Assembly: GCF_032191835.1 (NCBI RefSeq)
Contig: NC_083239.1
Coordinates: 24,242,001-24,306,000 of the forward strand
From: Heteronotia binoei
Taxonomy: Eukaryota
Length of the DNA: 64,000 nucleotides
Direction: 5' to 3'
Positions 2,396-17,189 of this stretch are shown here, in pieces. The notes under the pieces were generated by a model. The model was not told where the DNA came from. It saw nothing but the letters and a program-made list of their open reading frames with translations, and ran no database searches. Each line of letters begins with the position of its first letter. Within the stretch, counting starts at the first letter, position 1. The position numbers and the translations under genes were made by a program.

Positions 2396-2401
2396 TTTAT
2401 T
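2396..2401 (-). terminator. Candidate polyadenylation signal AATAAA of the LU-like gene
   Basis: TTTATT on the plus strand about 780 nt past the stop codon; cleavage site not observable. Confidence 0.5.
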
Positions 2402-3180
2402 GGTCTTAAAGGTGGCTCTGGACTCAAAATTTATCCAGCAAGAACTTCAGTCTCACTTATTGCTTCCTGAGGGCAGCTAGTGAAGGAAGGGTGGCTGAAA
2501 ATTCTGTTAAGTAGCATTGAGGGGATGCTGGTGCCACAGTGGGGAAGGCAAAACCCCTAGCCACGGAGGGAAAAACAATGCACTTTCCTTCTCACACATG
2601 GAGGAGGAGCATGCGGAAAAGACTCAGCTTTGCCTGGACCTTCTCTTTCTCCCCTTTGCAATTTTAAAGATATCTCTTTCACCTTCTCCCAAATCAGTCC
2701 TCCCCGCTGCTTGGCTCTGGCAAATCATCGGACTGGTAGAGTGAGCAGATTGACTGCCAGCAATGGAAGGGGCTGCTTCTTCACCAAGCCTGCCAGGGCC
2801 CGTTGTGTGCAAGAAGCAGTCCCACCGCACTTCCAGGATCCTCACTATAAAAAGCAAGCGAGACCCGACAGCCATTCCTAGGGGCACTGCTCTGACCCAG
2901 AGCACCTGCTCCAGCCCCGCTCTGGGTCTAACTAGAGCAAAGCAAGAGGCAGGTAGAGAGATGAACTCCATTGCCAAGAGACACAAGCCAAAGGTTTGGG
3001 ACAGAAAGCATTGTGCATAAGCTCTGCTCAGCATAGGGTGAAAGAAGGAGGGGGTATTTTCCTGAACGCCTGCCCCTTCTTCTTTGCAGAGGGATCCTAA
3101 CCCATAAGAGGGAGCCACACTAGCCCGCAGGCATGGTCTCAAGCCCAAAGACCCATTCTTCAACCTCAGAGGCCCAGCTG

Positions 3181-3444
3181 TCAGTGGGACCCCAAGGAGA
3201 ACAACAGGGCATAGTTCAGGCCCAGTAGTGCCACCCCAGTTAGGAACTGAAGCAGGGGGGCAGGAGCCAGAGACCCAGCCTGGTTGAAATGCACTTTGCC
3301 ATCCAGCTTGAGGCAACTGGTTTTGGGCATAGCAGGGCAGCATTCCTGATAGCAAGGTGCAGTGGATCCAGTGGTGCAGGGCCGGCCAGATGTTTTGCAG
3401 AGCTTGCTGCAGCCTGCCACGTAGTGGGGTCCTGTTTTCTTCAT
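3181..3444 (-). CDS. LU-like gene terminal coding exon 8 (domain 2 C-half + GPI-signal-like tail)
   Basis: Acceptor TTTTTCTCCTTCCAG; equals track ORF 3181..3444; 7 Cys, then NQAGS, a hydrophobic stretch and TGA. Confidence 0.9.
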   Translation of the reverse strand: MKKTGPHYVAGCSKLCKTSGRPCTTGSTAPCYQECCPAMPKTSCLKLDGKVHFNQAGSLAPAPLLQFLTGVALLGLNYALLFSLGSH

Positions 3445-6400
3445 CTGGAAGGAGAAAAAGCAGCAGTCAGGTCCTGGCTGCAGCTACCAGACCTGTGTGA
3501 TTGAGAGCTACAGCCCTTCCTGAGGAGGGCTCCGTGAGGGGCTGAGGATTACCAAGGCCCAGATTTAAGTAGTGTTGCCAATCTCCAGGTGGGGCTTGGA
3601 GATCTCCCAGCATTATAATGGATTTCTAGACTATGGAGATAAGTTCCTCTGGAGAAAATGGCTGTTTGGAGGATGGTCTCTACGGCATTATACCACACTG
3701 AGATTCCTCCCCTTCCCAAACCCTGCCTTCCCTTCACCCCAAATCTCCCGGAATTTCCCAACCTGGAGTTGGCAACTCCAGCAACGACTGTGGGGCTTTT
3801 TGGCACAGTGGTGGTAGAAGCGCAACCTATTTGGGGGATAGCTGGAACAACAGGGTGCAGAAGTGGAAGGTGTTGGCTTGCCAACCTCCAGGTGATGACT
3901 GGAGATCTTCTGCTATTACAATTGACCTCCAGACAACAGAGATCAGTTCATCTGGAGAAAATAGCCACTGTGGAATGGGATTATACCCCATTGAAGTCCC
4001 TCCCCTCCCCAAACCCCACCCTCCTCGTGCTCCACCTCAAAATCTCCAGGTATTTCCCAACCCAGAGATGGCAACACTCATTAATAGATCCATTCGTTTC
4101 TCAGGCTTCAAAGCACAGCCTCTAGTTTGGCAGTTCAGGCAATACATAGCTAATGGGTTTCAGGGCTGCCAACTCCAGGTTCTGAAATTTGGAGTGGAGT
4201 CTTGGGAGGCCAGAGTTTTGGGGAGAGGAGGGGCCTCAGCAAAGTATAATGCCATAGTGTATTGTTCAAAGCAGTCATTTTCCCCAAGGGCACTGATTTC
4301 TGCCATCTGGAGATCAGTTGTAAATCACAGGAGAACTCCAGGTCCACTGGAGGTCAGCAGTGCTCTCTGACAGTTGTGCCTCTTCATGCTCTTTCCAACA
4401 AAAGTGGAGGCCTCAAACAAGCCAGCTGACTCCTGCTTCCAAGGTGCCATGGCAACCGTCTCACAGGGACTCACTGGACAGCTGTTTTGTTATGGGTGTG
4501 GAGAGAGGTCATAGGAAGAATGGGTTCCTGAAACAAGTCACAAGCCAGGCCTGAAAGAACACAGTGCAGCATGGCAAGAGCCTGGTGTTAGGCCTATGTA
4601 AGGGGACAGCTAAGAAACAGTACCTCACAGAAGTCAAAACCCACAATGCAGCCGACTGAAGCCTTTTGGCTCTTGTAGCAGCCATCTCCGTGGCAGGTGA
4701 AAGCTGAGCACACTTTCCCCTGGAAGGAAGAAAAACAGGCAGTCTCACAGCTCAGAAAATAATGCCCATTGTTGGGTCAAAATGGAGCATAGGACAGTGA
4801 GAGGTAAGAGCATTACTTCCACAGCAGGACAAGAATCCTAGATAGTCAGGGGAGCTAGGGAAATGTCACATCTTGTACAAACATGAAATGGCACCTACGT
4901 TTTTTGGGGGTGCTTTGGTGGTAGTAGTTGTGGGAGCTGGCGTAGTGGTGGGTGGCAGGTCACCTGGAAGAAACACAAGAGCAGAAGAGAGTGGAAAGAG
5001 AGTACTTTCACATGGCAACTGTTTGCAAGTTGATTTTGCTGTTCTTACACAGTAAAAATCCAGTTGCAAAAAACATTCTTTAGTGTGTGCGAATGCAGCC
5101 AGGGTTTGTGGCCTCAAGGGAAAGCTGTCAACAATAAACTGCTATGGTGGGATCCTTCTTAGACAGTTCTTGGTTCTGGGGATCTGGTGAGAAGGTGCAG
5201 TTGCATTCCCAGAGGATTGGCAAAGCCCTGCCTGAGAATATAGCTTGGCCCAGAAGCCCCACTATTCACCCCTGGATGGAAATCTCAAACAAGCCATACA
5301 TATCCTAGTGCCAGAGCTATCATGGGTAGCAAGGAAAAGACTCAGCATTTGCTGAGGACATGGCTCATGTTAGGTTTGCTTACCGTAGGCTGTGGCATTG
5401 AGGCTGAGGCAGTTGGGCGAACCACAGCACTCCAGTGTGCACAGGTTCATGCTAACACTGCCATTGGTCATGCACATCTCAGTGTCGTTGCTGCTGCCAC
5501 ACTCACTGCTGCACCGGGCCGTATAGCTGGTGCTGTTGAACCGGTAAAGCTGAAAGAACCACAGAAGCATTAGCTGGGGCAAGCAAACAGCCAGACTTTT
5601 CCCAGGTTGTCTTAATGGGAAGGGGGAGAAGGGTGTATTCCACTTCCTGCCCCAAATTACCCACTCCCTCCTTGGCTGTTCTGCATAGAAGGGCCTGCAG
5701 GGTGGTGTCTTGGGTCTCCTTACCTCACAGTGAGTTGCGTTGTGGCAGGGCTCTGTGTTGTTGCCATGAGCTTCTTCCTGGTAGCATCTCTCGCCAGAGC
5801 ACTGGAAGCTTTGACAGGTAAGCTGTAAGGAGAGGAGGCAGTTGGGTTACCAGCTCCAGGTTGGGAATTTCCTGGACATTTAGGGATAGAGCTTGGGGAG
5901 GATGGGGTTTGAGGAGGGGAGGGACCTCAACAAGGTACAACACCATAGAGTTTGCTCTCTGAAGATGCTGTTCTCTCCAGGGGAACTGATCTCTGTTGTT
6001 TGGAGATCTACTGTAATTCCAGGAGGTCTCAGGCCCCAATTGGAGGCTGGCAACCCTAGGAGGCAGTGCCCTTGCAGAGTCCAAAGGTGTTCCCTGGCCA
6101 CATGCCCAGTGCATTGCCAGCAGAATCAGCTGCTACCTGAGCCCTCCTTGAGGTCTGTCACCTTGCCAGTTGCCCTTTACATCTCTTCCTCCCTGCCCAG
6201 CAAGGGCCTCCACCATCTCCTGACTTCCTGTCCCACCAGAGGTCTTCCCCAGAAAGTCTTCCCTCCCTGCAGTTCCCACCCTTACTCCCATGCCGCAGCT
6301 AGTGGCTGAGTTTCCTTACAGGCATCATGACAGTTTTGTTCATTGTGCTGTCTGGGACCAGGGCTGCTCCTGAAATGGGCCCAGGATCTGGAAGAGAAGA

Positions 6401-6815
6401 GAGGGATGAGCATACGGCAGTCTCAGCCCTGGAGGAGGTGAAGATCTCAGGCATGGGAAGTCCTCCCTGCCAAGGCACTAGCCTGATCACAGACAGGTCC
6501 GTCCTGGGGCATGATGACTCTCCTCCCCTCCCAGCATGCACCTCTTTCTCTCACCTGCTGATGCACAAACATTCCAAGTGCTGAAATGCAGAGCAGCCCA
6601 GAACAGAAGGAAGCCTACAGAATGAGATAGGTAGATCAGAACAGGCAGAAATCCAAAAAGGGAAGAGCTTCCTAGCTTGTTCTGAAAGTGTCTAGAACCT
6701 ATCTTCAGCAGGTGCTTGCTCCATGACAGGAGACTACAACCCAGAAAGCACTCCCTGCACAAGAATGAAGGCTCTTACCTTGGGATGACATGATCCGGTA
6801 GCTGGGACGTGCCAT
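3181..6815 (-). CDS. Unrecognised 284-aa cell-surface glycoprotein: signal peptide + two 12-Cys Ly6/uPAR(LU)-like domains + Thr/Pro linker + GPI-anchor-like tail (8 coding exons)
   Basis: Join on minus strand: 6815-6779, 6614-6555, 6387-6320, 5822-5724, 5549-5384, 4963-4899, 4719-4624, 3444-3181 = 855 nt. All 7 introns are GT-AG with matching phases and there is no internal stop. The ATG is in AACAATGG context with in-frame stops upstream. Translation: MARPSYRIMSSQGFLLFWAALHFSTWNVCASADPGPISGAALVPDSTMNKTVMMPLTCQSFQCSGERCYQEEAHGNNTEPCHNATHCELYRFNSTSYTARCSSECGSSNDTEMCMTNGSVSMNLCTLECCGSPNCLSLNATAYGDLPPTTTPAPTTTTTKAPPKNGKVCSAFTCHGDGCYKSQKASVGCIVGFDFCEMKKTGPHYVAGCSKLCKTSGRPCTTGSTAPCYQECCPAMPKTSCLKLDGKVHFNQAGSLAPAPLLQFLTGVALLGLNYALLFSLGSH*. 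The LU-family assignment is inferred from cysteine spacing. Confidence 0.88.
3570..4362. mobile_element. Cluster of three TAGGGTTGCCA-family MITEs (3570-3780, 3874-4080, 4161-4362; third inverted)
   Basis: Shared GTTGCCAAC...GGAGATCT...CCCTGGAGAAAATGG...TGGCAAC sequence. Confidence 0.85.
4624..4719 (-). CDS. LU-like gene coding exon 7 (domain 2 N-half, GKVCSAFTCHGDGCY...FCE)
   Basis: Acceptor TTTTTCTTCCTTCCAG, donor GAG|GTACTG; phase 0-0; 5 Cys aligning with exon 4. Confidence 0.9.
4899..4963 (-). CDS. LU-like gene coding exon 6 (mucin-like linker DLPPTTTPAPTTTTTKAPPKN)
   Basis: Acceptor TGTGTTTCTTCCAG, donor AAC|GTAGGT; phase 1-0. Confidence 0.88.
5384..5549 (-). CDS. LU-like gene coding exon 5 (domain 1 C-half, LYRFNST...CTLECCGSPNCLSLNATAY)
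   Basis: Acceptor GTTCTTTCAG, donor ACG|GTAAGC; phase 0-1; 7 Cys; lies inside track ORF 5370..5582. Confidence 0.9.
5724..5822 (-). CDS. LU-like gene coding exon 4 (domain 1 N-half, LTCQSFQCSGERCY...HCE)
   Basis: Acceptor CTCCTCTCCTTACAG, donor GAG|GTAAGG; phase 0-0; 5 Cys. Confidence 0.9.
5842..6058. mobile_element. hAT-type MITE (TAGGGTTGCCA family) in intron 3 of the LU-like gene
   Basis: 8-bp duplication GGAGGCAG at 5834-5841 and 6059-6066; family termini. Confidence 0.85.
6320..6387 (-). CDS. LU-like gene coding exon 3 (DPGPISGAALVPDSTMNKTVMMP)
   Basis: Acceptor CTCTCTTCTCTTCCAG, donor CCT|GTAAGG; phase 1-0. Confidence 0.85.
6555..6614 (-). CDS. LU-like gene coding exon 2 (hydrophobic core of signal peptide, FLLFWAALHFSTWNVCASA)
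   Basis: Acceptor TCATTCTGTAG, donor CAG|GTGAGA; phase 1-1; the A-S-A cleavage motif coincides with the exon end. Confidence 0.85.
6779..6815 (-). CDS. LU-like gene coding exon 1 (MARPSYRIMSSQ-G)
   Basis: Exon acceptor CTCTCCCCAG lies just before 6853, the ATG is at 6815, and the donor is AAG|GTAAGA; phase 1. Confidence 0.8.
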
Positions 6816-9199
6816 TGTTAATCACAGGGACTTGCTGCTACTGGGACCTTAGGCTGGGGAGAGTAACATGTTCCTTTTGAGAGAGGAATTTGAAAGGCAG
6901 CAAGGCAGATCCCACTAAGACATGAAATCTAGAAGTGAAATACACCTCTCCCCCCAAAAAACACCTAGAACCATTTGTCTACCAGGCAGCCTGAGCAATA
7001 CTTTGCAATTCATGTTGCTCTCTTTTGGCCTCTTCTGCCAGAACTAAAGGGAATAAAAAGGCATATAAAATTCTCTCTTGGGCTGTGAACTATTGCTCCA
7101 TCTGGCCAATATGCCTTACATGTTCCAGAGCTTGTGATGCTCTGACCATAACCTCTGCTCCTGCGGGAGGAGAGGCCCAGAAAGGGACAGCCAGCCAGGC
7201 AGCACACTCATTAGCCTTGCTTTCCCAGAGGAAATAGTTGGCTCTTGCTGCTCCTTAGACCAGGATGACCATATGTGGCCATCTGTTTCACAGGGCGGCT
7301 TGTGCCACTGGCAGCAGCTCACTCCCCACAGGCTGGTACCAGGCCTCAACCAAGCACCTCATGGACCCACAGAGCACTAAGTGTCCTCAGCATGCTCCCT
7401 CCCTTCCTCCCATGTCTCATAGGACTGATGTTGGCCAAGACCACCCAGTGCCAAGCTGGTCATCAAGTGCCCTTCTGCAGCCCAAAAGACACAGCAAACC
7501 CCACACCTGGATCTCCATGGGAAGCACTCTCAGTGGGAGTGGAGAGCAACTTGGTTTCTCCCTAGGGGGCTGATCAAACTTTTGCCAGCCTTTCCATTGT
7601 TTTGATTTTGGTGTTAATGTGAACTGCTTTGGGAATTCTGAATGCAGAAATGGCCAGTTGACTAGAGGACCATTCACTATGGTTGCTTCTGCCCTTTGGA
7701 CTTCCCTTCCCTGCTTCAAGATTGTGAAAGTTCAAGCTAGTTCCAGAAGCCCTGTCTCTGAGGAAAAAGCTTTCTGTAGCCAGGATTTAGTAGCTCATGT
7801 CAATCATAAATCTGGGGATCGGTTTTATTTCATAACTGATCTATAAGTTCCACTCTAGCAAGAACATATTTAGAATAACAAATGTTGTCAGCCTCTGGGT
7901 TCATGAGAGGGATCTCTAAGAAAGGCCTTCATGAAAATACATGGTCACTTGGTGTCTCATAAAAAAACAAGACTCTCTAGAGAAGGCAAAAATGCTTGGA
8001 AAATTTAAGGCAGTTATAAAACTTCCATGTGAGATGGATTGACTCAATAAAGAAAGACAGGACCCTTAGTTTGCAAGACATTTTGGAAAGGTTATTAATT
8101 CAAAGGGTTGGAAGGAACTTGATGGCATTTTTAACACATGTACACACACGGGCTGCAAGGCACATGCAGTCCTCCAAAACTTGGGCTCCTGAAATGTGGT
8201 CAATGCCATTGAGAGAAGGAAGAAAAAACATCTGGAAGTGACCTCAATGTGGAGAGAGAGGGATCCTACAAGCCTGACAAGACAGCAAGTTTCAAAAGCT
8301 CTGTTCTAGGTTTCCCTGCAGATCCCCCCAGTGGCTGGTGGCTGTCATGGAGACTGGAAAATGATAAGCCCCGAGGCCCAGAGTTGTTCACTAATGACAC
8401 ACACGGTTGGCCCAGCAACAGCCTGTTTAGCAGAGTCTCAGAGGGGAAAGAGTGGAGCCACAGACAGACGTCAAGAACAGCAACATACAGCTTGCCAACA
8501 AGGGTGAGCCAACGCCCAGTCAACAGCTCTGGCTGAAGCTTAGCCTGAGAAGACTAGACCATTCACAAAACCATCCCCACATCTTTTAGTGGCTTCTGTT
8601 GAAGCTTTTATCTGGAGAGTGAGGGAGAGTACACTCACTCATAGCAAGGATGTGCAAAAATAGTGCTTGGCCCTTCCAGCCTCAGCACCTGGAGATACTG
8701 CTTCACATCTGCTAATCTCTAAATCCTTGTGATGCTGCTGGCTGTACCAAAATCGAGGCCCTACTGGAAATGCAGGAGGTTGTCATCCTGAACAAAAGAC
8801 CAATGCTGCATCTCTGGTATCTGGTACTACTACATGGTTATCATCCTCTTGTGATCAAAAACATCTCTTGTAGTCTCAAACATTCAAATTCTCCACAGTT
8901 TATAACCAAATTTGCTCTTCAGAAGCCACCAGCCTCCAAACTACAGAACTGGGCAAGGAAGAGAGGGCAGCTCCCCACATACTGGGATAGCAAGAGAGAA
9001 ATCATCCACCCACCTGTCCATCCATCCACCATTACTGTTCAGAGTTCCAGCCTGCATTGAGGATGCAGGACAAACCACCTTAGCTTTAAGCAGGAACTTC
9101 CAACCAGTCCCATGGGCAGAACATTCACTCTATCAGCCTTTCAATCTCAGACAACCACACCACTCCCCCAAAGGAACCCACCTGGTTCAGTTCACTTAC

Positions 9200-9511
9200 C
9201 TGGCTCGCCTGACACCTATGGGGAAGCCCTGCTTGCCTGTCTGAGCAACTTCTGATTGCCTTCAACACTGGCAGAATAGATGCACCTTGGGGAGCCCTCT
9301 TCCACGCCCAGGCAGAGACGGCGCCAACCAACAGATGGAGATGAGTGGTAGGGATGGACGGATTCAGTTCCCTGATGCTGCAAGCAAGAAGCATTCTCTC
9401 CTTACCTGGGGCTCAGCCCATTGTTGAGAAACAGTTTGTGCGGGTGTGTTACACAATCTCAAAATCCTTGCTTCATTGAGAATTTCAGCCTTCCTGTCTG
9501 AGAAAGCTCAT
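9200..9511 (-). other. Possible non-coding 5' exon(s) of the LU-like gene
   Basis: Two consensus donors on the minus strand (CAG|GTAAGG after 9406, CAG|GTAAGT after 9200), 2.3 kb upstream of coding exon 1, which itself begins with an acceptor; no convincing ORF. Confidence 0.3.
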
Positions 9512-14547: not shown

Positions 14548-17189
14548 TATATGTCCAGATGTCACTTTCAGGGTTCCACCTTATAGGCTTGTTGAAAGAG
14601 GACAGTTTAACAAGCCCTGTGGAACTGGTTAAAGTCCCGCAGGGCTCGCACTTCCTCCGGTAGCTGATCCCACCAGTGGGGAGCCATTATTGAGAAGGCC
14701 TGCTCCCTCGTTACTTTCAGTTTGGCCTCCTTTGGTCCAGGGATTTTTAGGAGATTCTGGGAGCTAGATCTCAGTGCTCTCTGGGGAACATATGGAGAGA
14801 GGCGGTCCCTAAGGTAGGCAGGTCCTCGGCCATATAGGGCTTTAAAGGTAATAACCAGCACCTTGTAGCGAACTCAGAATACAATTGGAAGCCAGTGCAG
14901 CTCCCTCAGCCCAGGCTGTACGTGTTCCCACCGAGGTAGTCCCACTAACAGCCTGGCCGCCGCATTCTGCACTAGCTGCAGTTTCCGAGTTCGGCACAGG
15001 GGCAGCCCCATGTAGAGGGCATTACAGTAGTCTAATCTCGAGGTGACCATTGCATGGATCACTGTTGCTAGGTCGCTACATTCCAGGAAGGGGGCCAGCT
15101 GCCTCGCCCTTCTAAGGTGGAAGAAGGCGGATTTAGCAGTGGCTGCTATCTGTGCCTCCATTGTCAAGGAAGGCTCCAGTAGCACTCCCAGGCTCTTGAC
15201 CCTGCGCACTGGTATCAGTGACACACCGTCAAAGACCGGTAGGGAGATCTCCCCTCCTAGCTCGCTGCGGCCAACGCAAAGAACCTCTGTCTTTGCTGGG
15301 TTCAGCTTCAACCCACTCAGCTTAATCCAGCCTGCCACGGCTTGCAATGCTCGGTCCAGATTTACAGGGGCGTCGTCAGTCTGGCCGCCCATCAATAGAT
15401 AGAGCTGAGTGTCATCAGCATACTGATGGAAACCCAGCCCATGTCTCCGGGCGATCTGGGCAAGGGGGCGCATAAAGATATTAAACAACATCGGGGAGAG
15501 AACTGCCCCTTGAGGCACCCCACAGTTAAGTAGGTGTCTCTGGGACAGCTCTCCTCCAACCACCACCCTTTGTCCCCGATCTTCAAGGAAGGAGGAAAGC
15601 CACTATAAGGCTAGCCCCCGAATTCCTGCGTTGGCGAGGCGGCGGGTCAGCAGCCGATGATCATATCGAACGCAGCCAATAGGTCTAGCAACAGCAATAC
15701 CGCCGAGCCGCCTCGATCCAGATGTCGCCGGAGGTCATCCATGAGGGCGACCAACACTGTCTCCACCCCGTGGCCCGGGCAGAAGCCGGACTGGTATGGG
15801 TCCAAGGTGGAAGCGTCATCCAAGAAGCCCTGTAACTGCAATGCCACAGCCCTCTCAATGATTTTGCCCAAAAAGGGCAAGTTTGAGACCGGCCAATAAT
15901 GAGCCAATTCGGCCAGATCTGATGTAACCTTTTTCAGGAGGGGACGGACTGCCTCCTTCATTTGAACTCTATTTAGTAAATTTTTGTTCACAGACCTTCT
16001 CCCCATATTCCACCTGGTCCCCAAAGCTCTGCTTGTGTCCTGTTATTTTAGGAAGACTCTACTAAAACAGCCTCTGCTCTACTTGCTATCCCCATCTCGC
16101 CACTGGGGCTGTTGCTTTCTGGGCCCAAAGCAGGACTGGGATAATTGCAGCAACAAGCCTGCCCCCAATTAGATTAATTATTCCCTCCCTCCCTCCTTGG
16201 GGAACTCGTCACTGGGGACCCAAAAGAACATAGAAACCACAACAGATCATTCTGAGAGCTGGGAAGCCGGTAGTGGGAAGGGAAATACAGCCAACAGATA
16301 GATGCAGATGTGTGTGGTCTGTTCTGCAAAGAAGAGCAACCACTTTAAAAGAAGTTATCTTATTTTCTAACTAGCCTGAAAATTTACATGTACCCAGTAG
16401 ATTCTCAGTGGGACACATCTGATCTGTCACCAGCTAGCACTCCAGGGAAGGGGAAATTGCATGAAGCAGACTTCTCATATAAAACAGCCCTGGGCAGTCT
16501 CCAAAGAGGTGCCTCTTTGACCACACATTAGACTTTCCGGAGAGCATGAAATCAGGACCTGAATGAGAAGAGCCATCATCAGCTGAAGCAGACATGGCTG
16601 GCTCTAAAGAGACCAACGGAACAGGTGCTTCAAGTGCTTCCTATTGCAGCCAGGCCAAATAAGGTTGCCACAGGGTACATCCTTCTGCAAGACAGATGAA
16701 CTATTGCAAAAGCACAGAAACATGCCTTCTGAGGCATCCACCCACCAGTTGCCTTCTTTTTCTCCCATCACAGAGGCAAGCTGCTTAAGACACTGACAAT
16801 CTGCAATTCTCCATGTTCTCATGAGCAAAGGAAGGACACCTAGAGCTTGCTGTGTGGAACATTGGAGCCCCTTTGTTTGGGAGAATGACATGGCCATGGC
16901 TCTTCCAAAGACACAGGAACATTCAGTTGCCTTCTGCTGCATGGCAAAGGAACCGCAAGGGATGAGGGCACAAAGCTTGCTGGATTAAAGGAACTCCACG
17001 ACCCTCATGCCCTACCTCCTCCTTCTTCTTAGGGGAAAAAAGATGGTGGCCTCTAAACTTGATCTTAGCTGTGACTGGGCAGCATAACTATAGGTGGCAA
17101 CTGGTGACTCTTAGAATTAAATGGCTTTTCTTAACTATGCCCCCCATCCCAAGAATTTCTGTTTATAGAAAACTAGACATAATCAAATA

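Follow-up and report, generated by a model that had tools for sequence, protein, structure and literature searches.

Does the series of small open segments on the minus strand between positions 6,815 and 3,181 of this stretch make up a real gene, and if so, to which protein family does its product belong? The stretch, referred to below as the window, comprises 64,000 nucleotides (nt) from Heteronotia binoei (RefSeq assembly GCF_032191835.1, contig NC_083239.1, positions 24,242,001 to 24,306,000). A preliminary description, made from the letters alone, had proposed a hidden gene for an unrecognised glycoprotein here, with two tandem three-finger domains of the Ly6/uPAR (LU) type and a glycosylphosphatidylinositol (GPI) anchor. 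LU proteins are compact binding modules whose roles vary widely, from protease focusing and lipase transport to complement control, modulation of nicotinic receptors and gamete recognition. From the analysis reported here we conclude, with a probability of roughly 80%, that the locus is an intact, single-copy and selectively maintained protein-coding gene, orthologous to an unnamed gene that lies between SF3A3 and INPP5B in a lizard and a bat, and that its product carries two three-finger domains and a GPI-attachment signal.

The evidence that the gene is real comes mainly from comparison with other species. Over its full length (residues 1-284) the window product is colinear, with 86.6% of positions identical, with residues 1-284 of a 284-residue RefSeq protein of another gecko, Sphaerodactylus townsendi; its identity to proteins of lacertids, amphisbaenians and cordylids is 72-75%. 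A phmmer search with the 87 residues of the last exon against 1.84 billion representatives gave 33 clusters, and in many of these a protein was hit at two places, the mark of a two-domain architecture. For quantification of the selective pressure we compared the coding sequence with that of a cordylid lizard and obtained a nonsynonymous rate (dN) of 0.147 and a synonymous rate (dS) of 0.728, giving a dN/dS ratio of 0.20. The gene is present as a single copy in its own 2.63-Gb genome, and no paralogue was found either in the window or elsewhere in that genome.

The exon structure is conserved as well. The exons of the cordylid lizard and of the bat Phyllostomus discolor were rebuilt from their genomic loci, and the resulting translations equal the database proteins exactly. 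The lizard gene has eight exons (25, 60, 56, 99, 169, 71, 96 and 264 nt) with the same phases as the window gene, and the bat gene has seven (43, 68, 99, 181, 65, 96 and 267 nt), again with the same phases and with the five domain and linker exons in common with the window gene. The two domain exons of 99 nt and 96 nt have identical lengths in all three species. In each of them the introns ahead of either domain are in phase 0, and phase 1 occurs only after domain 1.

The gene model itself was obtained by reading the minus strand of window positions 2900-7100 and joining eight segments into one coding sequence. The eight exons (6815..3181) have lengths of 37, 60, 68, 99, 166, 65, 96 and 264 nt, which add up to an in-frame 855 nt encoding 284 amino acids (aa) and a TGA stop codon, and when spliced from the window sequence every intron runs from GT to AG with a pyrimidine-rich acceptor. 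The start codon lies in the context AACAATGG, with A at position -3 and G at position +4. The features, all on the minus strand and listed in the order of transcription, are the following.

6779..6815, minus strand: exon 1, with the ATG (6815-6813) and the first 12 codons (putative N-region of the signal peptide), an in-frame TGA upstream (6824-6822) and a GT donor.

6555..6614, minus strand: exon 2, ending at residue 32 with C-A-S-A and encoding the putative signal-peptide core, which is hydrophobic; the structure model has a helix at residues 10-24.

6320..6387, minus strand: exon 3, residues 33-55, a short and variable stretch near the N-terminus that contains a single N-X-T sequon; predicted local distance difference test score (pLDDT) of the model below 50.

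5724..5822, minus strand: exon 4, first half of domain 1 with cysteines 1-5; 99 nt, with length and phase as in lizard and bat.

5384..5549, minus strand: exon 5, second half of domain 1 with cysteines 6-12, ending CC-x4-C-L.

4899..4963, minus strand: exon 6, Pro/Thr-rich linker, probably an O-glycosylated hinge; pLDDT below 50 at residues 147-157; a separate exon in lizard and bat too.

4624..4719, minus strand: exon 7, first half of domain 2 with cysteines 1-5; 96 nt here, in lizard and in bat.

3286..3444, minus strand: 5' part of exon 8, second half of domain 2 with cysteines 6-12, through F250.

3181..3285, minus strand: 3' part of exon 8, predicted GPI-attachment signal, in which small residues (N251-S255) precede a Pro/Ala spacer and a hydrophobic tail that runs to H284; the TGA stop follows.

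2396..2401, minus strand: candidate polyadenylation signal, the nearest AATAAA 3' of the stop codon.

The product accordingly reads, in order, as a hydrophobic N-terminus, the exon 3 segment, a domain with 12 cysteines, the Pro/Thr linker, a second domain with 12 cysteines, the sequence N-Q-A-G-S, the Pro/Ala spacer, and the hydrophobic tail. It contains seven N-X-S/T sequons, every one of them N-terminal of the linker. It is clear from the reassembly that the gene was described correctly in every detail: the eight GT-AG exons with matching phases and the 284-aa open reading frame are all present, as are the Kozak-type start codon with its in-frame stop (9 nt upstream), the AATAAA (779 nt past the stop codon), and the proposed layout, from the A-S-A at the end of exon 2 over the two 12-cysteine domains and the linker to NQAGS and a hydrophobic tail whose end is uncharged. 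Such a layout is far beyond chance.

Some further observations concern the introns and the 5' end. Copies of a SINE-like repeat (short interspersed nuclear element), both direct and inverted, lie at window 3575-4075 in intron 7 and at 5846-6030 in intron 3. The repeat arms are 64-101 nt long and 77-81% complementary to each other across exons 4-7. They could pair in the pre-mRNA; interspersed repeats of this type are as expected of introns. For the N-terminal extensions found in isoforms from Podarcis, Python and Crotalus, no counterpart in the form of an alternative first exon upstream was detectable in the window.

Having secured the gene model, we turn to the two domains. In an alignment of 37 family members, which range from skate to bat, conservation of each of the 24 domain cysteines is complete or reaches at least 90%. 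When the profile of domain 2 was aligned with that of domain 1 by hhalign, the probability was 99.1% (E 1e-18). The two domains are thus homologous to each other and arose by an internal duplication, which is ancient, since the skate already has a domain of each type. The domains differ in two respects. Mean column identity is 57% for domain 2 and 47% for domain 1, and the family members carry on average 5.2 sequons in domain 1 and 0.43 in domain 2.

The fold was analyzed with models of the Sphaerodactylus orthologue rather than of the window's own protein, and these are predicted, not solved, structures. The full-length AlphaFold2 model, built with the family alignment, reaches pLDDT 80-93 within the two domains and drops to low values in the linker and in the N-terminal segment; domain 2 modelled alone reached a pLDDT of 91.2 and a predicted template modelling score of 0.82. 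Compared with 48,161 solved chains using VIA-align, the domain 2 model matched 43 with Z>=2, and the top 38 of these are all three-finger proteins. The best Z scores belong to GPIHBP1 (7.7), Lynx1 (7.6), TEX101 (6.9), CD59 (6.7), Lypd6b (6.7) and uPAR (6.6); snake toxins come next, and the ectodomains of TGF-beta-family receptors are found among the lower matches at Z 3.8-5.5. Domain 1, taken from the full model, matches independently (Lynx1 with Z 7.1, TEX101 with Z 6.3, and Lypd6b). Foldseek against the PDB returned three-finger proteins only, filling 50 of 50 rows for domain 2, and against the Swiss-Prot models its top ranks were LYPD5 (E 9e-6), PINLYP, LYPD8, TEX101, LYPD4 and LYPD3. Collectively, the models predict with confidence that both domains fold into three-finger modules, and the expectation that AlphaFold and Foldseek would point this way was borne out, since both domains match essentially only LU and other three-finger proteins.

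How does the family relate to the formal definition of the LU superfamily? An LU domain contains ten cysteines, paired 1-5, 2-3, 4-6, 7-8 and 9-10, followed by an invariant non-glycosylated asparagine right after the last cysteine, and it is encoded by two exons, generally with phase-1 introns on its flanks (PMC6600238). All human multi-LU proteins lack the 7-8 bond in the N-terminal domain, and their genes form one cluster at 19q13 (PMC6600238). Here the gaps between successive cysteines are 4, 4, 12, 5, 13, 3, 8, 10, 3, 0, 4 in domain 1 and 4, 4, 9, 6, 12, 3, 6, 7, 3, 0, 7 in domain 2, and the 12 cysteines per domain can be read as the ten ancestral LU cysteines plus one extra pair, which would lie in finger 3. 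On this mapping domain 1 retains both cysteines corresponding to 7 and 8, and its locus is not the multi-LU cluster. The hallmark C-N is missing from the family: the residue after the last cysteine is leucine in 24 of 25 and methionine in 1 of 25 members for domain 1, leucine in 23 of 28 and methionine in 5 of 28 for domain 2, and asparagine in none, while a canonical LU domain from the same genome does end in C-N. Each domain occupies two exons (4 and 5, 7 and 8), as in LU genes, and the phases of the flanking introns deviate from the LU norm. On the strength of the models we file the family in the three-finger/LU superfamily at the level of fold, as a family of its own that has no sequence link to the known LU families.

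A number of results weigh against the reading that we prefer. None of 43 family members (14 scanned at E<=10, 29 at E<=1, by HMMER with default filters) matched a Pfam LU-clan profile such as PF00021, PF00087, PF16975 or PF17064, nor did the four exon pieces of the window that were compared with Pfam. The domain profiles found no PDB sequence at E<=10, and hhalign comparisons with the canonical 10-cysteine LU domain taken from this genome yielded probabilities of just 2.6% and 0.2%. The UPAR_LY6 hidden Markov model (HMM) was silent at the locus, though as a positive control it found 23 exon matches elsewhere in the genome. The ten-plus-two mapping is a possible reading of the cysteine spacing. 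The structure scores of Z 6-7.7 are middling in absolute terms, and the single-domain Foldseek E values are weak (0.08 or worse). The assessment of the GPI signal and of signal-peptide cleavage relied on rules of thumb, not on a predictor. Finally, no RNA run turned up among the sequencing runs searched with the whole gene or with the last exon and the 3' untranslated region; one DNA run contained 5% of the words. With respect to the structure scores, middling absolute values are usual for small disulfide-rich domains, and it is the exclusivity of the three-finger matches, not the height of the scores, that carries the fold argument.

These results bear first of all on the possibility that the domains are not LU homologues but some other small disulfide-rich fold, for instance TNFR-type repeats, with the three-finger prediction reflecting convergence or an artefact. 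It could be supported by the lack of any sequence profile that ties the family to LU, the absent asparagine, the domain-flanking introns that are not both in phase 1, and the fact that UniProt has automatically named one member “TNFR-Cys domain-containing protein”. However, no TNFR structure was matched in the searches, where three-finger proteins took ranks 1-38 among the 43 chains with Z>=2 and filled each of the 50 Foldseek rows; the two domains match three-finger proteins independently of each other; and the spacing of the cysteines can be fitted to the C-x-C...CC-x-C pattern of LU domains, with each domain on two exons like LU genes. The TNFR-type reading was rejected on the fold searches, and we consider non-homology to LU improbable in general. 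The assignment to the LU family made in the preliminary description is supported at the level of fold, where the structure searches agree with it; at the level of sequence neither Pfam, PDB nor hhalign provided a link.

A second alternative concerns the mode of anchoring. By rule-of-thumb judgement the C-terminus has the layout of a GPI signal, with N-Q-A-G-S, then the Pro/Ala spacer, and finally a stretch of about 22 hydrophobic residues that closes the chain, and a hydrophobic, nearly uncharged tail of 20 residues closes 33 of 37 family members, with the motif N-x-A-[GSA] recurring. From this layout the product is probably a GPI-anchored surface glycoprotein. The protein might instead be secreted or held by a C-terminal transmembrane helix, as AlphaFold2 draws the tail as a helix (residues 258-282), and the tail is absent from some annotated isoforms elsewhere (chicken). 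On the other hand, the tail ends the protein without any charged cytoplasmic residues and is preceded by small residues and a short spacer of Pro and Ala, the classic arrangement for GPI attachment, and the combination of the N-x-A-[GSA] motif with a hydrophobic end is found in 33 of the 37 members. We therefore give a secreted or transmembrane form a small chance and retain the GPI-anchored form.

A still smaller chance is given to the locus being silent or a decaying relic in this species, as it apparently is in cetaceans. The failure to find an RNA run and the partial or degraded gene models of cetaceans and hippo would fit such a state, but the intact reading frame, the retention of every splice site and of the full set of 24 domain cysteines, and a dN/dS of 0.20 against the lizard (dS 0.73) make it very unlikely, and we take the gene to be selectively maintained.

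The last possibility concerns the identity of the gene and is best considered together with its surroundings. In both the cordylid lizard and the bat the called genes follow each other on one strand in the order SF3A3, LU-fold gene, INPP5B. In the window, translated matches with the lizard and bat loci (85-100% identity) place the 3' exons of SF3A3 at 23250-18796 on the minus strand, directly upstream of the gene. The colinear protein, the exon structure and the flanking genes thus all agree with the unnamed LOC orthologous group between SF3A3 and INPP5B. A trout member in UniProt has been automatically named after an INPP5B domain; the entry looks like a gene model fused with its neighbour, which suggests the same gene order in a teleost. 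The 23 UPAR_LY6 (PF00021) exon matches (E<=1) of the own genome lie elsewhere, clustered at C7 5.65-6.31 Mb and C17 41.2-42.9 Mb, and the nearest ones on the gene's own contig are about 17 Mb away. That the gene is an orthologue or recent copy of a named multi-LU gene (LYPD3/C4.4A, LYPD5/Haldisin, TEX101, LYPD4, PINLYP or snake PLI-gamma) is hardly credible, for although the named multi-LU proteins are the top structural neighbours and several share the two LU domains and the GPI anchor, the identity in the structural alignments is just 12-20%, the family matches neither UPAR_LY6 nor PLA2_inh in Pfam, the locus is SF3A3-INPP5B and not the human multi-LU cluster at 19q13 (PMC6600238), the N-terminal domain retains the cysteines of the 7-8 bond that is absent there from all human multi-LU proteins (PMC6600238), and every orthologue is unnamed. 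By this low identity and different locus the protein is not LYPD3, LYPD5, TEX101 or PLI-gamma, in agreement with the preliminary description, which could recognise a match to none of them.

Between SF3A3 and the gene three noncoding blocks (8303-8486, 9160-9328 and 16136-16267) are 74-76% identical to the cordylid lizard. The nearest of these, 1.5-2.5 kb upstream of the ATG, and its companions are candidates for promoter or enhancer elements or for an untranslated first exon.

How widespread is the family, and why has it escaped attention? Among fish, members were found in skate, bichir, paddlefish, gar, bowfin, teleosts (Conger, Sardina, Danionella), coelacanth and lungfish, and among tetrapods other than placental mammals in frogs, salamanders, turtles, a gharial, many birds, many lizards and snakes, platypus and opossum. 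Within the placentals, bats and a mole have intact members, and those of cetaceans and hippo are partial or have a cysteine replaced. No primate or rodent member was among the database members found, which is not proof of absence. A profile word search with domain 2 returned nothing but fragments of the same family. Outside the jawed vertebrates, an 80-residue product of the lamprey Lampetra fluviatilis matches the last exon (E 1e-4), with the motifs AGCS...QECC...SCLKLDG and a hydrophobic tail; this fragment hints at a family predating jawed vertebrates.

Two lineages deviate from the general pattern. In the cetacean and hippo models the first half of domain 1 is missing and there is an unrelated insertion, and Tursiops has an arginine in place of one conserved cysteine, which suggests lineage-specific decay within the placentals. 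In birds the segment before domain 1 has grown to more than 200 residues of tandem repeats rich in Ala, Thr, Ser and Asn, with many N-X-S/T sequons, and the proteins reach up to 500 aa.

The repeat-rich N-terminus accounts for misnomers such as “mucin-5AC-like”. In the databases the orthologues are either “uncharacterized” or carry misleading names (besides “mucin-5AC-like”, “endochitinase A”, “putative GPI-anchored protein pfl2” and “serine-rich adhesin”), and UniProt has automatically named two members “UPAR/Ly6 domain-containing protein” in addition to the TNFR-Cys entry mentioned above. A literature search yielded nothing on the family, and no paper citing any of 18 LOC identifiers was found. 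All orthologues found are thus unnamed or misnamed, as had been anticipated with the expectation of unnamed LOC genes only. To call the gene hidden or unrecognised was nevertheless too strong, since RefSeq pipelines predict it in dozens of species and two of the UniProt names do point to UPAR/Ly6. What is new is the recognition that the scattered LOC entries make up one ancient, syntenic and unstudied LU-fold family with a cysteine pattern of its own.

With regard to the history of the family, we lean towards a scenario in which the tandem architecture was acquired independently of uPAR/C4.4A, in a family of two-domain, 12-cysteine three-finger surface proteins that would be older than the jawed vertebrates, as the possible lamprey fragment hints, has resided between SF3A3 and INPP5B for hundreds of millions of years, would have escaped study through being missing or decayed in primates, rodents and some further mammals, and has a conserved ligand; the odds for this scenario appear somewhat better than even. 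If it is true, the repeated loss in mammals marks a function that is dispensable or has been replaced.

Based on the sequence features, the following course of events can be proposed for the product. It would enter the endoplasmic reticulum, where the signal peptide would be cleaved after A32, given the small residues at -3 and -1, and where six disulfides would lock each domain. N-glycosylation could take place at up to seven sequons, and the Pro/Thr hinge may be O-glycosylated. Near N251-S255 the C-terminal tail would be replaced by the GPI anchor, leading to display on the outer leaflet of the plasma membrane, and there it might bind a protein partner, as a module without enzymatic activity, by analogy with the GPI-anchored uPAR, GPIHBP1, CD59, Lynx1 and TEX101. 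Domain 2 is the probable contact surface because it would adjoin the membrane and be free of sugar, and is the more conserved, and domain 1 together with the N-terminal segment may form a glycan-covered outer part.

In kind the system is not new, and models of the gene are already present in public annotation. The analysis does reveal a family that is conserved from cartilaginous fish to bats, is under purifying selection and is invisible to the Pfam LU profiles, and the lack of study would be explained by the fact that no primate or rodent member was found. The family appears to represent a second, independent duplication of the LU domain, in which, as far as the cysteine mapping goes, the N-terminal domain keeps all ancestral disulfides. 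For comparative genomics the family is a clear-cut case of loss or decay confined to certain lineages.

It remains to compare the gene with known systems. C4.4A/LYPD3 and Haldisin/LYPD5 have the same parts, namely two three-finger domains, each encoded by two exons, along with a signal peptide, a segment rich in Ser, Thr and Pro, and a GPI signal. Both belong to the best structural matches, yet the identity is below 20%, no Pfam domain is shared and the locus differs. Furthermore, the Pro/Thr segment lies between the domains in the window gene and before the anchor in LYPD3 and LYPD5, and the window gene has 12 cysteines in both domains, keeps the N-terminal cysteines 7 and 8 that LYPD3 and LYPD5 lack, and has leucine instead of asparagine after the last cysteine.

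GPIHBP1 and Lynx1, the best matches of domain 2 (root-mean-square deviation 3.1 over 72 residues and 2.7 over 67 residues, respectively), are GPI-anchored binders of a protein partner. They differ from the window product by having one domain with ten cysteines, no sequence similarity between them and the window product was detected, and the acidic N-terminal tail of GPIHBP1 has no counterpart in it. A fold in common with these two proteins does not show a common ligand. LYPD6 and LYPD6B (UPAR_LY6_2) are the nearest named clusters by language-model features, with values of 0.85-0.86 that are only a lead when below 0.9. Lypd6b is also a structural match (Z 6.0-6.7), but LYPD6 and LYPD6B are single-domain proteins and the family has no match to PF16975.

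The gamma-type phospholipase A2 (PLA2) inhibitors of snakes are secreted serum proteins. Together with PINLYP they share the two tandem three-finger domains with the window gene and are among the top Foldseek matches. The ESM Atlas clusters of the PLA2 inhibitors and PINLYP carry PF02988 (PLA2_inh) and PF00021 (UPAR_LY6), whereas the family matches neither, and snakes hold a separate orthologue of the window gene besides their gamma-type PLA2 inhibitors.

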